Assembly: GCF_052425735.1 (NCBI RefSeq)
Contig: NC_135763.1
Coordinates: forward strand, 33,914,001 to 33,978,000
Direction: 5' to 3'
DNA: 64,000 bases
Source: Oculina patagonica
Lineage: Eukaryota
Part shown: in pieces, positions 36,951 to 54,355 of the stretch
Layout of the letters: each line of letters begins with the position of its first letter
Position numbering within the stretch: position 1 is the stretch's first letter
Notes under the pieces: generated by a model
Databases searched by the model: none
The model's input: only the letters and a program-made list of their open reading frames with translations
What the model was told of the DNA's origin: nothing
Made by a program: the position numbers and the translations under genes

Positions 36951-37764
36951 TAACTCCCCCCCCCCCCCCCCCCCCCCCCCAGGTGATTACTTCAGCTTGT
37001 ACAATAACGAATTAATCTGTAATTTAATGCTTATAAATCATGTTTGTTATTATATAGCTAAATGTGTTCCATTGAATGAATATTTCTGTTTCATTTTCGA
37101 TAAGTTTCGAATTCTCCGGGGGAAGGGGGTAGGGGGTAGGAATAGGCAGCAAAGCCAGCTATCACCCAGTATTTTTTGCGCGCGTTGAAAGTGCGCGCTT
37201 TTCACAAGGCCTTCTCGGCATTTATATTCATTTATTCGTTCTATTTTGTGCATCAGGTGGAAAAAGAATCAAGTTACAAATCTGGGACACTGCCGGCCAG
37301 GAAAGGTAAATGAAATCCTTAATTTATATTGAAACAACAACGAAACATTTGCAATAAAGTGCGCATTTTCTTGTAGATTCCAGACCATCACGGCCACATG
37401 TTACCGTGGAGCCCAGGGTATAATGTTGGTGTATGACGTCACCGACGAAAAGTCTTTCAAGAATATTTCAAAATGGGTGCAAAAAACACAGGAGCTCGCC
37501 AACCCTAACGTTCAAAAGATGTTGGTTGCGAACAAATGCGATCTCAAAAAACAAAGACTGGTCACAAGAGAGAAAGGAGAACTGCTCGCACAAGATCTTG
37601 ACATTCGATACGCGGAAATTAGCGCTCTGTCAAATTTGAACGTAGAAGATGCATTTGCCACATTGACACAAGACGTTTTAAATAATTTTGTTTGTTCTTC
37701 CGCGGAGAGTTGGGCCACTTTAACGGTAGAGGAGACGACTAAACAGCCTTGCTGTGCACAATAG
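36243..37764 (+). CDS. Rab8/10/13-family small GTPase, copy B, 197 aa
   Basis: Exons 36243-36399, 37257-37305, 37377-37764; [35 protein letters not shown]-terminal CCAQ. Confidence 0.93.
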
Positions 37765-40761: not shown

Positions 40762-42403
40762 GAGAAAATCCGCCAGGACTTCGAGTAGTTATTGGACAAA
40801 ATTATGTACCAAAACTACTTACACCTGATTGCAAGCTTTTGTGTTACTGCTTCAAATATCTTATCGAAAGAAATCTTTTCTAACAACACCAAACATCGAA
40901 AACTAATTTCGAAGTTCCACTAAATTCCCATGAATCGCTTAAAAGATGTGAGCTTTTGACCATAGCTTGTGAACTTTGAATATCATTTTCTCAGACTCTG
41001 ATAAGAAATTGTTGTACCAGAATTATTTACACCTTATTGCAAACTTTTTTTGTTACTGCTTCAAATATCTTATCAAAAGAAATCTTTTCTAACAACACCA
41101 AACATCGAAAACAAATTTGGAAGTTCCGCTGAATTCCACTGACTCGCTTAAGACGAATTTACAAAATGGCTACACGTGCGATTTTGCCTATACCTTGTGA
41201 ACTTTGAAATTTATTTTCTTAGACTCTGATAAGAAATTGTTGTTGGTGTTATCACGGATAATTACTTACATCTTTACCTTTTATCAAGGGTAGGAAATAA
41301 CGCAATAGGATTTAAATTATTCTGGTTCCTAGTGGATTCCGTCTTAATTCGTCAAAAACACCTAGCTTTCTGTCCGACTTCGATCCGACTTTGACCGCTA
41401 CTATTGGATCACAATTCCAGATTAGATTTTAGGAACTCGGTAGAAAGTCCTGACAATCAATTAAAATCAATGAAAATTCAAATATCGAAAATCACTCAAC
41501 ACAGTGGCTTTGATTTTTATTGATTTTTAATATCAATCAATTGATTACTATCAGGAGCCCATGTTACTATTTATTTTAATTGATTACTATTGATTCTATT
41601 TATTATTGATTCTTATTGATTGAAATCGTCGGGTATAAAGTAGATAATGACCCATGACTCATGACTCACGCATGATGAAATATACGTACACAAAGCGTCA
41701 GGTCGGTTGTTTAAGGGTGCGTTTCTTTGGGAAAATCCAAAATTGGATTATTAATCTCAGATCACACGGATACTTTGCTCCCAAAGAAACGAAGAATCCG
41801 AAAACGGATTGTTTACGCGTCGCTATTTATGCACGTTGGTTCGCTGTGATTGGTGCATCCGACTAACAGATGCTGTTCCCTCAGAGGTCCGCTTTGTAGT
41901 TGAACGGCTGTTATGCTTTCTGATCGTAGGTATCCATGCTTGAGTCTTGTGTCATGTTTTTTTTGGCGCCCCGAGCCCTTCAAAAGCCCTTATTTTGCGA
42001 GATCATTTAGCGACCGGTCAAAAAAAAAGAGAGGAAGGGAAGGGAGAACTGCCTTCTCTCTCTCTTCTATTGGGAAAAGGACGGATAAGGAAGGAAGAAC
42101 GAAACAGAGGAAGGAAGGAAAAGAGAAAAGAAACGCGCGCGATGAAATCCTCTTTTATTTGTGTAGTTGCCCCCGCAGGGTTTTGGGCCCAGAGGCCAAA
42201 ACCCGAGGAGGCACCTTAGGAGTGACAATAGAAAGCAAGGGACCGCGGACGAAAATGCTGCTGTGTACGTAGGAGCTGGCGACAGCTCTAATCAGCCAAA
42301 AATAAAAATACAGAGACAAGAAAAGCAAGGCTGACACTACGTAGAAATGAAAAAACCTTAACGGGACAACGACATGATAGAGTCCAAACTGAAAGTTAAA
42401 AAT

Positions 42404-42458
42404 GCAAACTCTGGACAGCTGTTTCGACCTGATTGGGTCTCTTCAGCAGAGTGTATGC
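42404..42458 (-). ncRNA. Type I hammerhead ribozyme, mirror copy
   Basis: Exact reverse complement of 43230-43284 in the left arm of the palindrome. Confidence 0.88.
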
Positions 42459-43229
42459 CGCACAGAATAGAACAACCAGCGCAAAGACAGTTGTCTATAA
42501 AGTGCTCGTGGTAATGACAATCCGGATGGGCTCAAATTCAAACACTCGCCCATTGATCACAGCCGCGTGGCTGTTACTCAATAGGTCAAGAATTCGAAAT
42601 ATCATGTCGTTGTCTCGATAAGGAAAGTGAGAATAGACAGAACTATCCTTACACTGAAAACATGGACAAAACCATGTGAAAAACAACACTGCAAACATGG
42701 ACAGAACCATGTGAAAACAGTGAAAATGTACAGCATATCGGATCTAAAAGATCTACGGTCCAAATAAAACTAAAAGTGACAATAGAAAGCAAGGGACCGC
42801 GGACGAAAATGCTGCTGTGTACGTAGGAGCTGGCGACAGCTCTTAGAGCTGTCGCCAGCTCCTACGTACACAGCAGCATTTTCGTCCGCGGTCCCTTGCT
42901 TTCTATTGTCACTTTTAGTTTTATTTGGACCGTAGATCTTTTAGATCCGATATGCTGTACATTTTCACTGTTTTCACATGGTTCTGTCCATGTTTGCAGT
43001 GTTGTTTTTCACATGGTTTTGTCCATGTTTTCAGTGTAAGGATAGTTCTGTCTATTCTCACTTTCCTTATCGAGACAACGACATGATATTTCGAATTCTT
43101 GACCTATTGAGTAACAGCCACGCGGCTGTGATCAATGGGCGAGTGTTTGAATTTGAGCCCATCCGGATTGTCATTACCACGAGCACTTTATAGACAACTG
43201 TCTTTGCGCTGGTTGTTCTATTCTGTGCG

Positions 43230-43284
43230 GCATACACTCTGCTGAAGAGACCCAATCAGGTCGAAACAGCTGTCCAGAGTTTGC
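43230..43284 (+). ncRNA. Type I hammerhead ribozyme (minimal, palindromic stem III)
   Basis: ACTCTG-CTGAAGA-GACC(CAATCA)GGTC-GAAA-CAGCTG-TC-CAGAGT: stem I ACTCTG/CAGAGT, core CUGANGA, stem II, GAAA, GUC cleavage triplet ending at 43274. Confidence 0.88.
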
Positions 43285-43705
43285 ATTTTTGACTTTCAGT
43301 TTGGACTCTATCATGTCGTTGTCCCGTTAAGGTTTTTTCATTTCTACGTAGTGTCAGCCTTGCTTTTCTTGTCTCTGTACCTTAGGAGTCCCCGGGTGTA
43401 TACATACAAGGACAAAGAATATTTGTTGAAAAAGTAAGAAATGTGTTTGTAATGGGCGAAGCGTTCTCGTTTGACAAAACTAGGCGCGCACGGTCGTGAC
43501 GGGTAATATTTTAGCAAGCGCGCACGGTGGTGTCGGGTACTTGCAACCACGAGGTCGCGTTTCAACCTCGTCCCCAGGGCTATCCGCGTGGTACCCCCCG
43601 ACGAATGGCCCTGGTGGAGGCTGCAAAAATCTCCAGAAATCTTGGAGATTGCCTCGTTTCTAAATTGTCGCATGAGGTATGGGTCGAGTTCTTGCTTTAA
43701 AAAAA

Positions 43706-51757: not shown

Positions 51758-54355
51758 TGAACTTTTTTAGGCTTCTTTATTCCAATTGCTTAAATTGGAA
51801 ATTCACTGCGACGATCATTTATTACTTTCATATCCATCCGCAGTTCATATATGAATTATTTCATATACATTACATCATTTCACTCCTCTCACGGGTAAAA
51901 ATGAATATGAATTCACAATTGACCTCGCTCCCAATGTGTGGCTTCAATAGCTCAGTTAGTAGAGCATCGCACCGGTATCGCGGAGGTCACGGGTTCAAAT
52001 CCCGTTGAAGCCCTGAATTTTTTTCAGGCTTCTTTATTCCAATTACTTAAATTGGAAATTCACTGCGACAATCATTTATCACTTTCATATATGTACAATG
52101 TAGTAGTGAAGGAAGGGTCGTACTTTTGTCAGTCACCTAAAGGTTGAGGGGGGGGGGGGGGTCAGGAGTTTTTATCATTAAAATGCAGGGGAGGTCCAAC
52201 CCTTTTATTGAAAAGAAAAAAATTCCTAGCCACCCCCCCTCCCCAACCCCAAGAAAAAACGTACCTTCCCTTATTATCTAACAAATGTATATAGATCCCG
52301 GCCTTCCCCCAGCCAACGGGTTCCCCCAGGATTAAAGAGTTTCTCTCAGATTTTAGAAAGGCTTTCCTAGGCCAAAAAACCTATTACCGGTATCACAATA
52401 TGCTTGATAAAAGTAAAAAAAGTAAATGTTGTAAATTTGTCTGTGGTTGTATGTAAAGCGATTGATTTGTTTGTTAACTTTTGATTATTTTTTTAGGGGA
52501 AAAGATAATCAAGCTACAAATTTTCCATACTCAGGGACAGGAAAGGTAAAGTAGTCTCTCCGAGATAACATGAGTTTTACTACAACCCCCCCCCCCCCCC
52601 ACCGGGGATGATTCTGTCTATTGACACGGCTGGAAATGCAGTAAATACCCTCTATCCTCCGCAGAGGTTCCCGATGGGGCATTCGTTGTAAAAATTCGCT
52701 GGGCAAAGTGAGTGCAGGCGCAAAAGATAGAGATCCACTTCGCTCCAATCTCGAGCCCAGAGTCCGTCAGTCAGCGGTATTGGACGGATGTCCCGGCGAC
52801 CTTACCGATGAGCAACCGCTGACAGATCGAGGAGCCGGGGGACACTCTGGGCTCGAGATAGACTTTCTCATTTTATTTCGCTTGCGCTCTTTTCGTACAG
52901 CGGACTCTCCCCACCGAAAACCTCTCTGGGGAGCCTCTGCGGAGGAGAGAGGTAAATACCGTGTGGCACTCACTTTCTGCAGATTCTAATTCTTTTGCCA
53001 AATCTCGAACCCAGATCTTCTCAACCCTCGGAGAGAACATCTGGTAATTATGGGTTAGAGACTGTTGTGAGTGTTTTGTTGACAAATACACGCACGCGCT
53101 GGTCGCACAATAAACGAGAAAATTTCAATACTGCACTGCTGGCCTCACAATGAACTCGTGCAGTATTGAAAGTCTCTAACCCATAAATATTGCTCGCGTC
53201 AAATGTGTCAGAAGTCTGACACACAACGCGACTACGCATGCTCGGCAATTTTTTGGATGAAAGGCTCACTTGGCCGCTGTAAATAGGTCACGGTAATTAA
53301 CGGCAGTCAATCTAGACTACAAACAGAGAAATTTGGCGTACCACAAGGATCTGTTCTTGGTCCTCTACTTTTTGCATTGTTCTGCAGCGATCTGCCAAAT
53401 ATAACCGATGGTAGTGAAGGAGAGCTACACATGTATGCTGATGACACAACCATCTACGTCGCCGCCACAAGTCCGGACAAGGTAGCCACCGTGCTAAATT
53501 ACATCTTACGGAAATTATATCGCTGGTGTTGTCAACATTGATGACACCACACCCGGAAAAAAACGAATATATGCTGTTATATCGAAGATCGTTTACTGGC
53601 CCTTTACAAAGCATTAAGCTTGGGGAAAATAACATTAGGCAAGGACAGTGCGCTCAAATAGAACATTCATGTCAAAGAACTGTGTAAACGTTTCACCCAG
53701 AAACTGAACCTTTTGAGATCATTGTATTTTTGCCAATTCCTGCGAGAATTGACTTTTATTTTAAAGTAATTTTACCATCTTTTATGTACGGTATGGTAGT
53801 CTGGGGGTCGTGTGGCTCAACACTTTTCAGGGACTTAGAAAAAATCCATGTGCATGCCACCAAGTTAATTTTCGACTTAGACTGGTTCACCCCATCAGAA
53901 GACGTACTGCGTCAAGCAAAGTGGATACTATTTAGGCAAATGTACATCCGCAGGGTACTTTGTTTTGTCTTCAAATGTGTATCTGGAGGTGTTCCTGTCC
54001 AATTACAACGTGCGGAAACAAAGTTTGCATCATCCGCGCGCAAATGCTGAAGCTTTCCATCAGCCAATCAGATTGGCGAACTGAACGCATTTGACCAGAT
54101 GTGTACTACCGTGGTAAATAGGCATCTGGGTACGAGATTATCTTTTGCCATATGGTGCAGTTTCCTTCACATGTGCCAGTTTTTTTCCCGCCAACACGCT
54201 CCCACCCAACCCAACCTCCAGTTGTTTCCCGTCACAGCTACCTGTTTTCCCGCCATAATACCGGTGTTGTCTGTTGTGTCCGTCAGTTTCCAAGTTTTCT
54301 CGCTATAAAGAGTGACAGCACAGTTGGTTTTTCCGCCATCAATCAATCAATCAAT

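Follow-up and report, generated by a model that had tools for sequence, protein, structure and literature searches.

The window analyzed here is a 64,000-nt stretch of the Oculina patagonica genome (NC_135763.1, positions 33,914,001 to 33,978,000 of the forward strand), and coordinates are counted from its first letter. It contains an intergenic palindrome about 4.4 kb downstream of the last exon of one Rab gene, whose stop is near 37764. A sequence-only reading of this DNA had described 535-bp arms with one mismatch around a 1-nt center, and the coordinates agree: 42309-42843 and 42845-43379, 535 nt apiece, are reverse-complementary around T42844 with a single mismatch. The same reading had deduced a 554-nt unit from a 69-bp redundancy and had recognized an 11-bp TSD. 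Both are borne out, as 42221-42289 repeats 42775-42843 exactly as a direct redundancy with a spacing of 554, and the 11-bp sequence is found at both ends. Together, the 19-nt linker and the 69-nt redundancy make up an 88-nt extension that is absent from the right arm. At the mismatch it is the left arm that has a private change, with A at unit position U447, where the right arm and 42 of 44 family alignments have G. The GC content of the unit is 41.9%. The features are collected in Table 1.

Table 1. Features of the palindrome locus, in window coordinates, with U denoting positions in the 554-nt unit.
Feature	Position	Strand	Description
Left flank, other multi-copy repeat (host)	42136-42212	.	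Approximate extent; very high contig word depth and 88 empty-site matches
Left TSD copy	42213-42223	.	11 bp ACCTTAGGAGT; the final 3 nt double as the start of the element (microhomology)
Left arm	42221-42843	-	623 nt, full unit U1-554 plus a second U1-69; 3' end (B-end) outward at 42221
B-end motif	42221-42243	-	Within the 69-nt redundancy of the left arm
69-nt terminal redundancy	42221-42289	-	Second copy of U1-69; pseudo-LTR; part of the one-sided 88-nt tail
19-nt linker	42290-42308	-	U536-554; left arm only
Sole arm mismatch	42397	.	42397 T versus 43291 G (+ strand)
Type I hammerhead, left arm	42408-42452	-	Rfam Hammerhead_1 RF00163, 50.8 bits; predicted cleavage 3' of C42414, minus strand
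Center	42844	.	Single unpaired T, head-to-head junction; both arms begin exactly at U1
Right arm	42845-43379	+	535 nt, U1-535; 3' end (A-end) outward at 43379
Type I hammerhead, right arm	43236-43280	+	RF00163, 50.8 bits; predicted cleavage after C43274
A-end motif	43353-43379	+	Within the right arm
Right TSD copy	43379-43389	.	11 bp ACCTTAGGAGT; 1 nt overlap with the element end
Right flank, same host repeat	43390-43549	.	Approximate extent; contig word depth and empty-site matches

Each arm was said to carry a complete type I hammerhead, and the Rfam covariance model agrees, with both arms matching model positions 1-45 of 45 at scores above the gathering score of 34. The core is made of CUGAAGA, CGAAA, and GUC, with a helix I of 6 bp and a helix II of 4 bp with a 6-nt loop. 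Helix III in both hammerheads is, as the sequence-only reading had it, just the self-complementary ACAGCUGU. In unit numbering, the predicted cleavage site is U430/431. Helix III is too short to form within one molecule, so the prediction is that the hammerhead must dimerize in order to cut. In folding calculations, two copies joined by an intermolecular helix III of 8 bp reach -31.3 kcal/mol, and the catalytic fold of the monomer has -7.7 kcal/mol versus -13.6 kcal/mol for the MFE fold, which is not a hammerhead. Since the two hammerheads are on opposite strands, any single transcript has just one of them in sense. Dimer-type hammerheads, and opposite-strand pairs of them 100-700 bp apart, have been described in Penelope-like elements (PLEs) (PMC4209133). 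A sequence search of the supplement of PMC7229834 did not find this hammerhead sequence. Among copies of the unit, the hammerhead varies by 0.68% versus 2.7% for the rest of the unit, a 4-fold lower rate.

The locus had been described as having no RT or endonuclease ORF, and the ORF scan, Pfam, and translated comparison all concur. No ORF at the locus exceeds 71 aa, and there is no Pfam match and no tRNA; a dimer of the unit has a longest stop-to-stop frame of 115 aa and no coding remnant; and the unit has no translated similarity to PLE ORFs. Having no RT or GIY-YIG ORF, the element can be at most a non-autonomous passenger. A few other identities were tried and rejected. A match to the miRNA precursor mir-5985, on which a literature search found no paper, scored 59.7 bits where the gathering score is 100. 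Matches to other miRNAs and to coronavirus UTRs were far under threshold, and all of these matches are by-products of a perfect hairpin. A Pol III or tRNA-derived SINE was set aside given the lack of a tRNA and the many internal T-runs in the unit, as read by eye.

The unit belongs to a genome family with about 250 candidate matches (90 scored among 247). The fetched copies are mostly 94-99% identical to the palindrome unit, with a few older copies at 84-89%. Every long copy wraps from U554 directly to U1 with no ORF between, hence the unit is truly 554 nt. Insertions of the family typically show truncation at the 5' end, part of a tandem repeat, an inverted copy alongside, and a tail on one side, and the TSDs, which are 72% AT, are mostly 8-13 bp long with a mode of 11. 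The proposal of a very recent insertion of a non-coding ribozyme retroelement of about 554 nt is upheld by the family identity, the absence of an ORF, and the PLE-type architecture.

How the copies end is informative on the way such elements are copied. In 18 of 20 two-armed insertions, there is one A-end (U531-541) and one B-end (U554 plus 64-81), which is 88 nt further. The neighborhoods of the two ends align with each other over about 40 nt, with 3 of 2000 shuffles scoring equally well, and on this alignment we take the A-end and B-end motifs to be paralogous. Arms of the same locus differ by 0.65% when the old locus L038 is excluded, versus 3.5% between loci, and the arms of locus L010 have 0 differences in 492 nt. 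Because the arms of one locus share variants, we read paired arms as the product of one event on one template. The target sites are symmetric, with RGGC and GCCY on either side of some 11 AT-rich bp, in a consensus drawn from 16 sites counted as 32 half-sites, of which 18 have G at -3 and 18 have G at -2 (p ~5 × 10−6 each).

Long perfect palindromes are a recognized assembly problem (PMC8557442), and no contig piece listed spans the center of this one, so it is to be asked if it could be a fold-back chimera, made in assembly or sequencing, of a single-armed insertion. That is extremely improbable. Both arms together are enclosed by the 11-bp TSD, and the empty site reconstructed with a single TSD copy occurs 88 times in the genome versus 0 for a control, so many occurrences being found because the insertion is nested inside another repeat. 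Contigs of two runs contain the empty form as a joint from 42212 to 43379, with 11 letters fitting either side, a joint that derives from host-repeat paralogs and is not informative on presence/absence polymorphism at the locus. The two-armed layout recurs at no fewer than 18 other loci, each with a TSD of its own and with junctions at different points, and the arms at this locus differ in length by a family-typical 88 nt and carry one mismatch. The sequence-only reading had cited the TSD against a fold-back; with the empty-site paralogs and the family-wide two-armed pattern added to it, the artefact is excluded, and the palindrome is a genuine head-to-head insertion, made very recently and in a single event. 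A near-perfect palindrome with a TSD and without an ORF might also suggest a fold-back or MITE-like DNA transposon, having long terminal inverted repeats and hammerhead-like motifs by chance, but such an origin is hard to credit. The outer ends are fixed, with an 88-nt difference between the two, but the inner junctions vary among copies. Many copies are single-armed, and TSDs can have anywhere from 8 to 13 bp. All of this is what target-primed reverse transcription typically leaves, as opposed to cut-and-paste transposition.

If only heavily 5'-truncated copies had been sampled, the unit could instead be the terminal pseudo-LTR of a coding PLE. As in the pseudo-LTRs of PLEs, the hammerhead is near the 3' end. 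PLEs abound in the genome, where GIY-YIG candidate sites number at least 860, many of them paired in inverted orientation, and the majority of PLE copies are 5'-truncated (PMC8557442). Against this, in addition to the wrapping of each sufficiently long copy straight to U1 and the lack of translated similarity, there is the matter of neighbors. The search for further copies suggested in the sequence-only reading gave many candidates, with partial tandems among them, but not the linkage also proposed there as a check: no copy among those fetched or listed adjoins an RT or GIY-YIG gene, and none of them has a GIY-YIG match within 10 kb. An RT ORF of 1052 aa, 3 kb away from the copy at L033, was considered as part of a helper and rejected, as it is not contiguous with the element. 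The hammerheads at 12 GIY-YIG loci from two PLE families are different, and these loci have nothing in common with the unit beyond hammerhead-level similarity; an autonomous PLE with the family's 3' end was not found in the two PLE families examined, of many in the genome. The terminal repeat of a Penelope element, offered earlier as an alternative, is thus disfavored, and we rate it as quite improbable. Propagation via circular RNA had been mentioned as well. In the published model for animal retrozymes (PMC7229834), tandem transcripts would self-cleave, the 554-nt monomer would be circularized, and rolling-circle reverse transcription would lead to insertion. The exact 554-nt periodicity is in its favor, as are the several arms of more than one unit, of up to 855 nt (L002, L006, L018); at these few loci there are also two hammerheads on one strand, at a distance of 554 nt. 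Self-pairing of the unit RNA is strong (z = -9), and words of the element are present in contigs from one library of poly(A) RNA and in numerous runs that are guessed to be RNA, as assembled contigs from which RNA ends and circularity are not readable. The copy ends, however, do not fit. The 5' ends cluster at U1-30 and the short B arms stop at U1-13, and by hand tally 1 of about 54 arms starts at the cleavage site, 430. The enrichment at U1 is possibly in part ascertainment, since the query began at U1, with the short B arms being less biased. Moreover, no arm exceeds about 1.5 units, the palindrome locus has one sense hammerhead per strand and not the tandem same-strand pair of retrozymes, and a monomeric hammerhead is not predicted to be active. 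The retrozyme cycle is therefore unlikely here, and the pile-up at U1 and not at 430/431 argues for an uncleaved linear RNA starting at U1, not a cleaved or circular RNA, as the usual template.

The reading that we prefer, and think probable with good confidence, is a non-autonomous Penelope-mobilized element of the non-LTR retrozyme class, inserted by twin priming. That PLEs mobilize the family we infer solely from its insertion signature; the GIY-YIG candidate sites of the genome mean that potential helpers are available. A symmetric endonuclease would nick twice, about 11 bp apart, at the RGGC / AT-rich / GCCY targets, and both 3'-OH ends would then prime cDNA on the same RNA species. One cDNA would start at the motif ending near U535 (the A-end), and the other at the paralogous motif ending near U69 of the next repeat (the B-end, at +88 nt). 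At the palindrome locus, both cDNAs would have reached the RNA 5' end at U1 and been joined head-to-head with one extra T, and so would account for the palindrome of 535 nt, for the redundancy of 69 nt, and for a tail on one side only. Twin priming in L1, which Ostertag and Kazazian are said to have put forward in 2001 for inversion-bearing LINE-1 insertions, has the same elements: both 3'-OH ends of a staggered break prime, leaving an inverted 5' segment and a direct 3' segment within one TSD. The coral locus L020, where an inverted U1-103 is beside U101-554, looks just like that. The coral family differs from L1 in that priming usually begins at two sites that are defined and paralogous, and in that its arms overlap, the same RNA region being copied twice, hence the products are true palindromes and not inversions of non-overlapping parts.

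For PLEs, the published insertion architecture is a partial tandem, an inverted 5'-truncated copy, and a one-sided tail (PMC8557442), and the description of the locus in the sequence-only reading as an inverted plus partial-tandem structure of Penelope type fits it. The coral family resembles the EN+ PLEs (Penelope/Poseidon, Neptune, Nematis, Hydra, Naiad) in 5' truncation, a partial tandem with pseudo-LTR, the inverted 5'-truncated copy, a tail at one end only, and TSDs (PMC8557442), and also in having a terminal-region hammerhead that, from its short and palindromic helix III, should act as a dimer (PMC8557442, PMC4209133). It is unlike them in that the whole unit is 554 nt and has no RT or GIY-YIG ORF, and in that the hammerhead has a canonical helix I of 6 bp and helix II of 4 bp and is not the minimal variant with a long helix II typical of PLEs. 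The tail also counts against our preferred reading, having 88 nt where 30-40 bp is given for PLEs (PMC8557442), and ending in a copy of the motif of the other end. Non-autonomous Chlamys/PLE passengers, such as MRC1 of Chlamydomonas (PMC8557442), are likewise short and non-coding, with pseudo-LTRs and head-to-tail multicopy arrangement, and depend on an autonomous PLE. Their 3' ends, however, are common to identified autonomous families, and they are mostly without hammerheads, whereas the coral family has one.

The other class to compare is the metazoan non-LTR retrozymes, which are considered to be PLE derivatives (PMC7229834; preprint 10.64898/2026.07.22.740005), and which have been described in the coral Acropora millepora (Cervera & de la Pena 2020; Li et al. 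2026 preprint). Like them, the coral repeat does not code for protein, is low in GC, carries a type I hammerhead, has a TSD of more than 4 bp, and coexists with PLEs, and the unit size is within their range of 51-972 bp (Li et al. 2026 preprint, 10.64898/2026.07.22.740005). Unlike them, the coral copies are mostly dispersed as single, partial, or head-to-head copies and not as long tandem arrays, and the 554-nt unit exceeds the characterized circular RNAs of 170-400 nt. The family is also in keeping with a recent proposal that traces animal retrozymes to the terminal regions of PLEs (preprint 10.64898/2026.07.22.740005).

Hammerhead-bearing non-coding PLE passengers and head-to-head insertions are already described in the literature. 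What is new at the family level is the pairing of A- and B-ends, the variants common to paired arms, and the symmetric RGGC / AT-rich / GCCY targets. This is a young family with dozens of datable single-event insertions, in which fixed outer ends, variable inner ends, TSDs, and targets are directly readable, and it bears on two questions raised in the literature: how PLE integration yields inverted and tandem structures with a one-sided tail, and what role the hammerhead has. The A plus B end rule, the paralogous end motifs, the variants common to paired arms, and the symmetric target suggest, as a tentative and rather doubtful mechanism, a symmetric dimeric RT/EN of Penelope type that would start cDNA internally at the motif of about 40 nt, twice on one template, acting at both nicks at once. 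If true, it would explain the long-unexplained tail of PLEs together with their inverted and tandem architecture. The dimer-only hammerhead might, in turn, serve the pairing of two templates rather than cutting.

A read-through dsRNA hairpin from the palindrome is plausible. Eight further hammerhead loci turned out to be the same non-coding family. A related family, V, with no listed GIY-YIG site adjoining, is about 70% identical over the hammerhead and the 3' region and takes the form of short head-to-head copies.

The repeat unit of the insertion, U, is window 42290-42843 reverse-complemented to the sense of the hammerhead; it has 554 nt, and Un denotes its position n. Over their common 535 nt the two arms have a single mismatch, T at 42397 and G at 43291 as read on the plus strand. 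This is U447, where 42 of 44 family alignments agree with the right arm, so the change in the left arm is private. The 11-bp direct repeat around the structure overlaps the element ends by 3 nt on the left and 1 nt on the right. The sequence-only reading had described the arms, centre, redundancy and target-site duplication (TSD), and coordinates and alignment confirm all of them. It had also found the locus empty of RT and endonuclease ORFs, and this stands: the longest ORF has 71 aa, the ORFs have no Pfam match, and no tRNA-like gene was found at the locus. The insertion is intergenic, the last exon of the nearest upstream Rab gene ending near 37764. U also contains a tandem duplication and an inverted repeat, the latter predicted to close a long stem when the RNA folds.

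Features of the insertion, its surroundings and related elements (window positions unless a contig, C, of the genome, G000, is named)
Feature	Position	Strand	Content or score
Left arm	42221-42843	minus	U1-554, then U1-69
Right arm	42845-43379	plus	U1-535
Head-to-head centre	42844		single T; both arms meet exactly at U1
69-nt redundancy	42221-42289 = 42775-42843		exact
11-bp direct repeat	42213-42223 and 43379-43389		ACCTTAGGAGT; brackets whole structure
Type I hammerhead, left arm	42408-42452	minus	Rfam 50.8 bits, full length, gathering score 34
Type I hammerhead, right arm	43236-43280	plus	Rfam 50.8 bits, full length, gathering score 34
Predicted cleavage sites	after C42414 (minus strand) and after C43274		
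35-nt tandem duplication in U	42651-42717 / 42971-43037		94% identical
24-nt inverted repeat in U	42356-42379 / 42600-42623		92%, 220 nt apart
Host-repeat flanks	42136-42223 and 43390-43549		contig word depth very high
Direct repeat in right flank	43484-43505 / 43518-43539		34-nt spacing
mir-5985 match	42797-42891		Rfam 59.7 bits, gathering score 100, E = 7.5 × 10−11
tRNA	51941-52012		48.1 bits, 8.5 kb from insertion
Family V copy	L044:1083-1270 (G000:C10:17883023-17883263)		~70% identical to U364-544
47.3-bit hammerhead family	G000:C9:4253229/4253608, C11:7325961/7326338, C13:27945747/27945886, C13:27993481/27993620		
47.3-bit family member	C2:2850679		2.8 kb upstream of same-strand GIY-YIG match

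The palindrome is a true insertion and not an artefact. The empty site, rebuilt as a 28-mer from the two flanks with one TSD copy between them, has 88 genomic matches with at most 2 mismatches, 8 of them perfect; the reversed control has 0. Hence the site of insertion was a member of a different repeat family, and the event itself generated the 11-bp duplication; most empty copies read ACCCTAGGAGT where this locus reads ACCTTAGGAGT. Contigs of two public runs contain the joint 42212 to 43379 with 11 ambiguous letters, but its very high depth assigns it to paralogs of the host repeat rather than to this locus, and it is uninformative on polymorphism here. The right flank itself holds a short direct repeat.

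Both arms match Rfam Hammerhead_1, and these are the only ribozyme matches in the 64-kb window. The two hammerheads proposed earlier are thus present, with the clarification that they sit on opposite strands, so that any one transcript contains at most one in sense orientation. The 6-bp helix I and the 4-bp helix II with its 6-nt loop are both canonical, and helix III is the self-complementary ACAGCUGU, whose intramolecular closure is limited to 2 bp. The catalytic fold of the monomer is predicted at −7.7 kcal/mol versus −13.6 for the non-catalytic minimum-energy fold; for a dimeric hammerhead of two copies, with a helix III of 8 bp, the prediction is −31.3 kcal/mol. Such a dimeric arrangement is typical of most metazoan type I and Penelope-like element (PLE) hammerheads, which have low activity in vitro (PMC4209133). 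Among copies the hammerhead varies fourfold less than the rest of U (0.68% versus 2.7%), a conservation matched by some other segments of U. Folding prediction makes the U RNA strongly structured (z = −9).

A genomic search with the unit, which the sequence-only reading had proposed, gives 90 scored matches among 247 candidates in 529 Mb. None of the copies fetched or listed lies near a GIY-YIG match, and a translated comparison of U with the PLE ORFs at hand found no similarity. Identity to this locus is 94-99% for most of the fetched copies and 84-89% for a few older ones. In every copy long enough to tell, U554 is followed directly by U1, which fixes the length of the repeat unit at 554 nt with no space for an ORF. 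Across 38 fetched loci mapped onto U the 5' truncation points vary, and the 3' ends fall into only two classes, the A-end at U531-541 and the B-end, 88 nt beyond it, which passes U554 and runs from U1 to 64-81. An A-end is paired with a B-end in 18 of 20 two-armed insertions, as at this locus, with TSDs mostly of 8-13 bp (mode 11). Paralogy between the surroundings of the two ends extends over about 40 nt (GTCAGCCTTGCTTTTCTTGTCTCTGTA/TTTTTATTTTTGG versus GTCCCTTGCTTTCTATTGTCACT/TTTAGTTTTATTTGG), with an alignment score equalled in only 3 of 2000 shuffles. Arms diverge by 0.65% within a locus (the old locus L038 excluded) versus 3.5% between loci, and those of L010 are identical over 492 nt although that locus is 3% from U, which indicates that a single event copied both arms from one template species. 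In public runs, more than half of the 31-letter words of U occur under at least 5 organism codes (A, B, C, D, F), so near-identical copies are present in several labelled taxa or samples, reflecting either recent activity in close relatives or labelling.

What the template was can be asked of the arm starts. By a hand tally of mapped arms, about 16 of 54 begin within U1-30, an excess that may be partly ascertainment, the query having begun at U1. Less biased are the short B arms, which were picked up only through their partner arm, and about a dozen of these stop at U1-31; B arms running further start over the entire previous unit. There is a minor cluster at U482-501, and a single arm begins at the cleavage site, U430. 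Judged from these starts, the usual template seems to be a linear RNA that starts at U1 and has not been cleaved. Some templates were longer read-through RNAs, with arms of up to 855 nt. No feature of the copies calls for a circular intermediate.

In the proposed mechanism, nicking at two points about 11 bp apart would give two 3'-OH ends, each with the future TSD. Both could then prime cDNA on a single RNA species, with the A motif used by one end and the B motif by the other. Here both cDNAs would have run to the 5' end at U1 and been joined with one extra T. Twin priming is known for L1; the present case differs in having two defined paralogous sites and overlapping arms. We infer that such priming explains the A/B rule, the tail of 88 nt on one side only, the variants shared by arms and the exact junction of U1 with U1. 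It does not explain loci such as L006, where the B arm stops at U1 and its partner continues, and it gives the hammerhead no demonstrated role. Orienting 16 TSD-bearing two-armed insertions and pooling their sides yields 32 half-sites, with G at −3 and at −2 in 18 each (p ~5 × 10−6 for either) and C at −1 in 14 (p ~1.5 × 10−3), all against genome composition. AT content is 72% in TSDs and 47.5% in flanks. From these 16 sites the preferred target is tentatively symmetric, RGGC, an AT-rich stretch of about 11 bp, then GCCY, which suggests symmetric nicking of both strands.

Much of this has precedent. PLE insertions show strong 5' truncation, partial tandems forming pseudo-LTRs that carry the hammerheads, an inverted 5'-truncated copy often immediately adjacent, and a tail of 30-40 bp at one end only; Craig et al. 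(2021, PMC8557442) call their mechanism and the hammerhead role unresolved. Opposite-strand hammerhead pairs 100-700 bp apart were already seen by Cervera and de la Pena (2014, PMC4209133), who later defined animal non-LTR retrozymes (non-coding hammerhead retroelements), one coral included, and named PLEs as likely helpers (2020, PMC7229834). A 2026 preprint (10.64898/2026.07.22.740005) argues that retrozymes, with units of 51-972 bp, stem from PLE pseudo-LTRs. An autonomous PLE has an ORF, whereas this element has none, and a retrozyme has two hammerheads in tandem, whereas this locus does not. The locus fits a non-autonomous, PLE-mobilised hammerhead element; two PLE families inspected as helpers do not share the ends of U. 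The locus is a very young, single-event insertion of a new member of an already described element class. Its interest is modest, and its usefulness lies in what the family shows about priming sites, template ends and target symmetry.

The genome has at least 860 candidate GIY-YIG sites, with all 150 scored above the Pfam cut-off and many in inverted pairs with spacings of 1-5 kb. Identical 1371-aa open frames of one family occur at no fewer than 9 places, so intact PLE copies are apparently abundant. A first genome pass with Hammerhead_1 gave about 69,000 rough candidates, and several further hammerhead families are present. One, family V, occurs at about 59 places besides the copy tabulated, in most cases as short pairs arranged head-to-head whose outer ends are fixed; its hammerhead, CUGAUGAGGCCUAACAAGGCCGAAACAGCUGUC, is distinct from that of U but has the same helix III, and one copy abuts a 5'-truncated PLE with a different 3' hammerhead. 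Another, scoring 47.3 bits, forms two kinds of pair: on the same strand with a spacing of about 378 nt, a tandem retrozyme-like layout, and on opposite strands 139 nt apart, as mini head-to-head insertions. Its member at C2:2850679 could be the pseudo-LTR of a coding PLE.

Besides the hammerheads, the tRNA is the only above-threshold Rfam match in the window. The palindrome centre matches mir-5985, for which the literature search found no paper, in letters as well as pairing. This is probably a by-product of the perfect hairpin; a further possibility is that mir-5985, an annotated miRNA family, originated at the junction of a head-to-head retroelement insertion in its own host.
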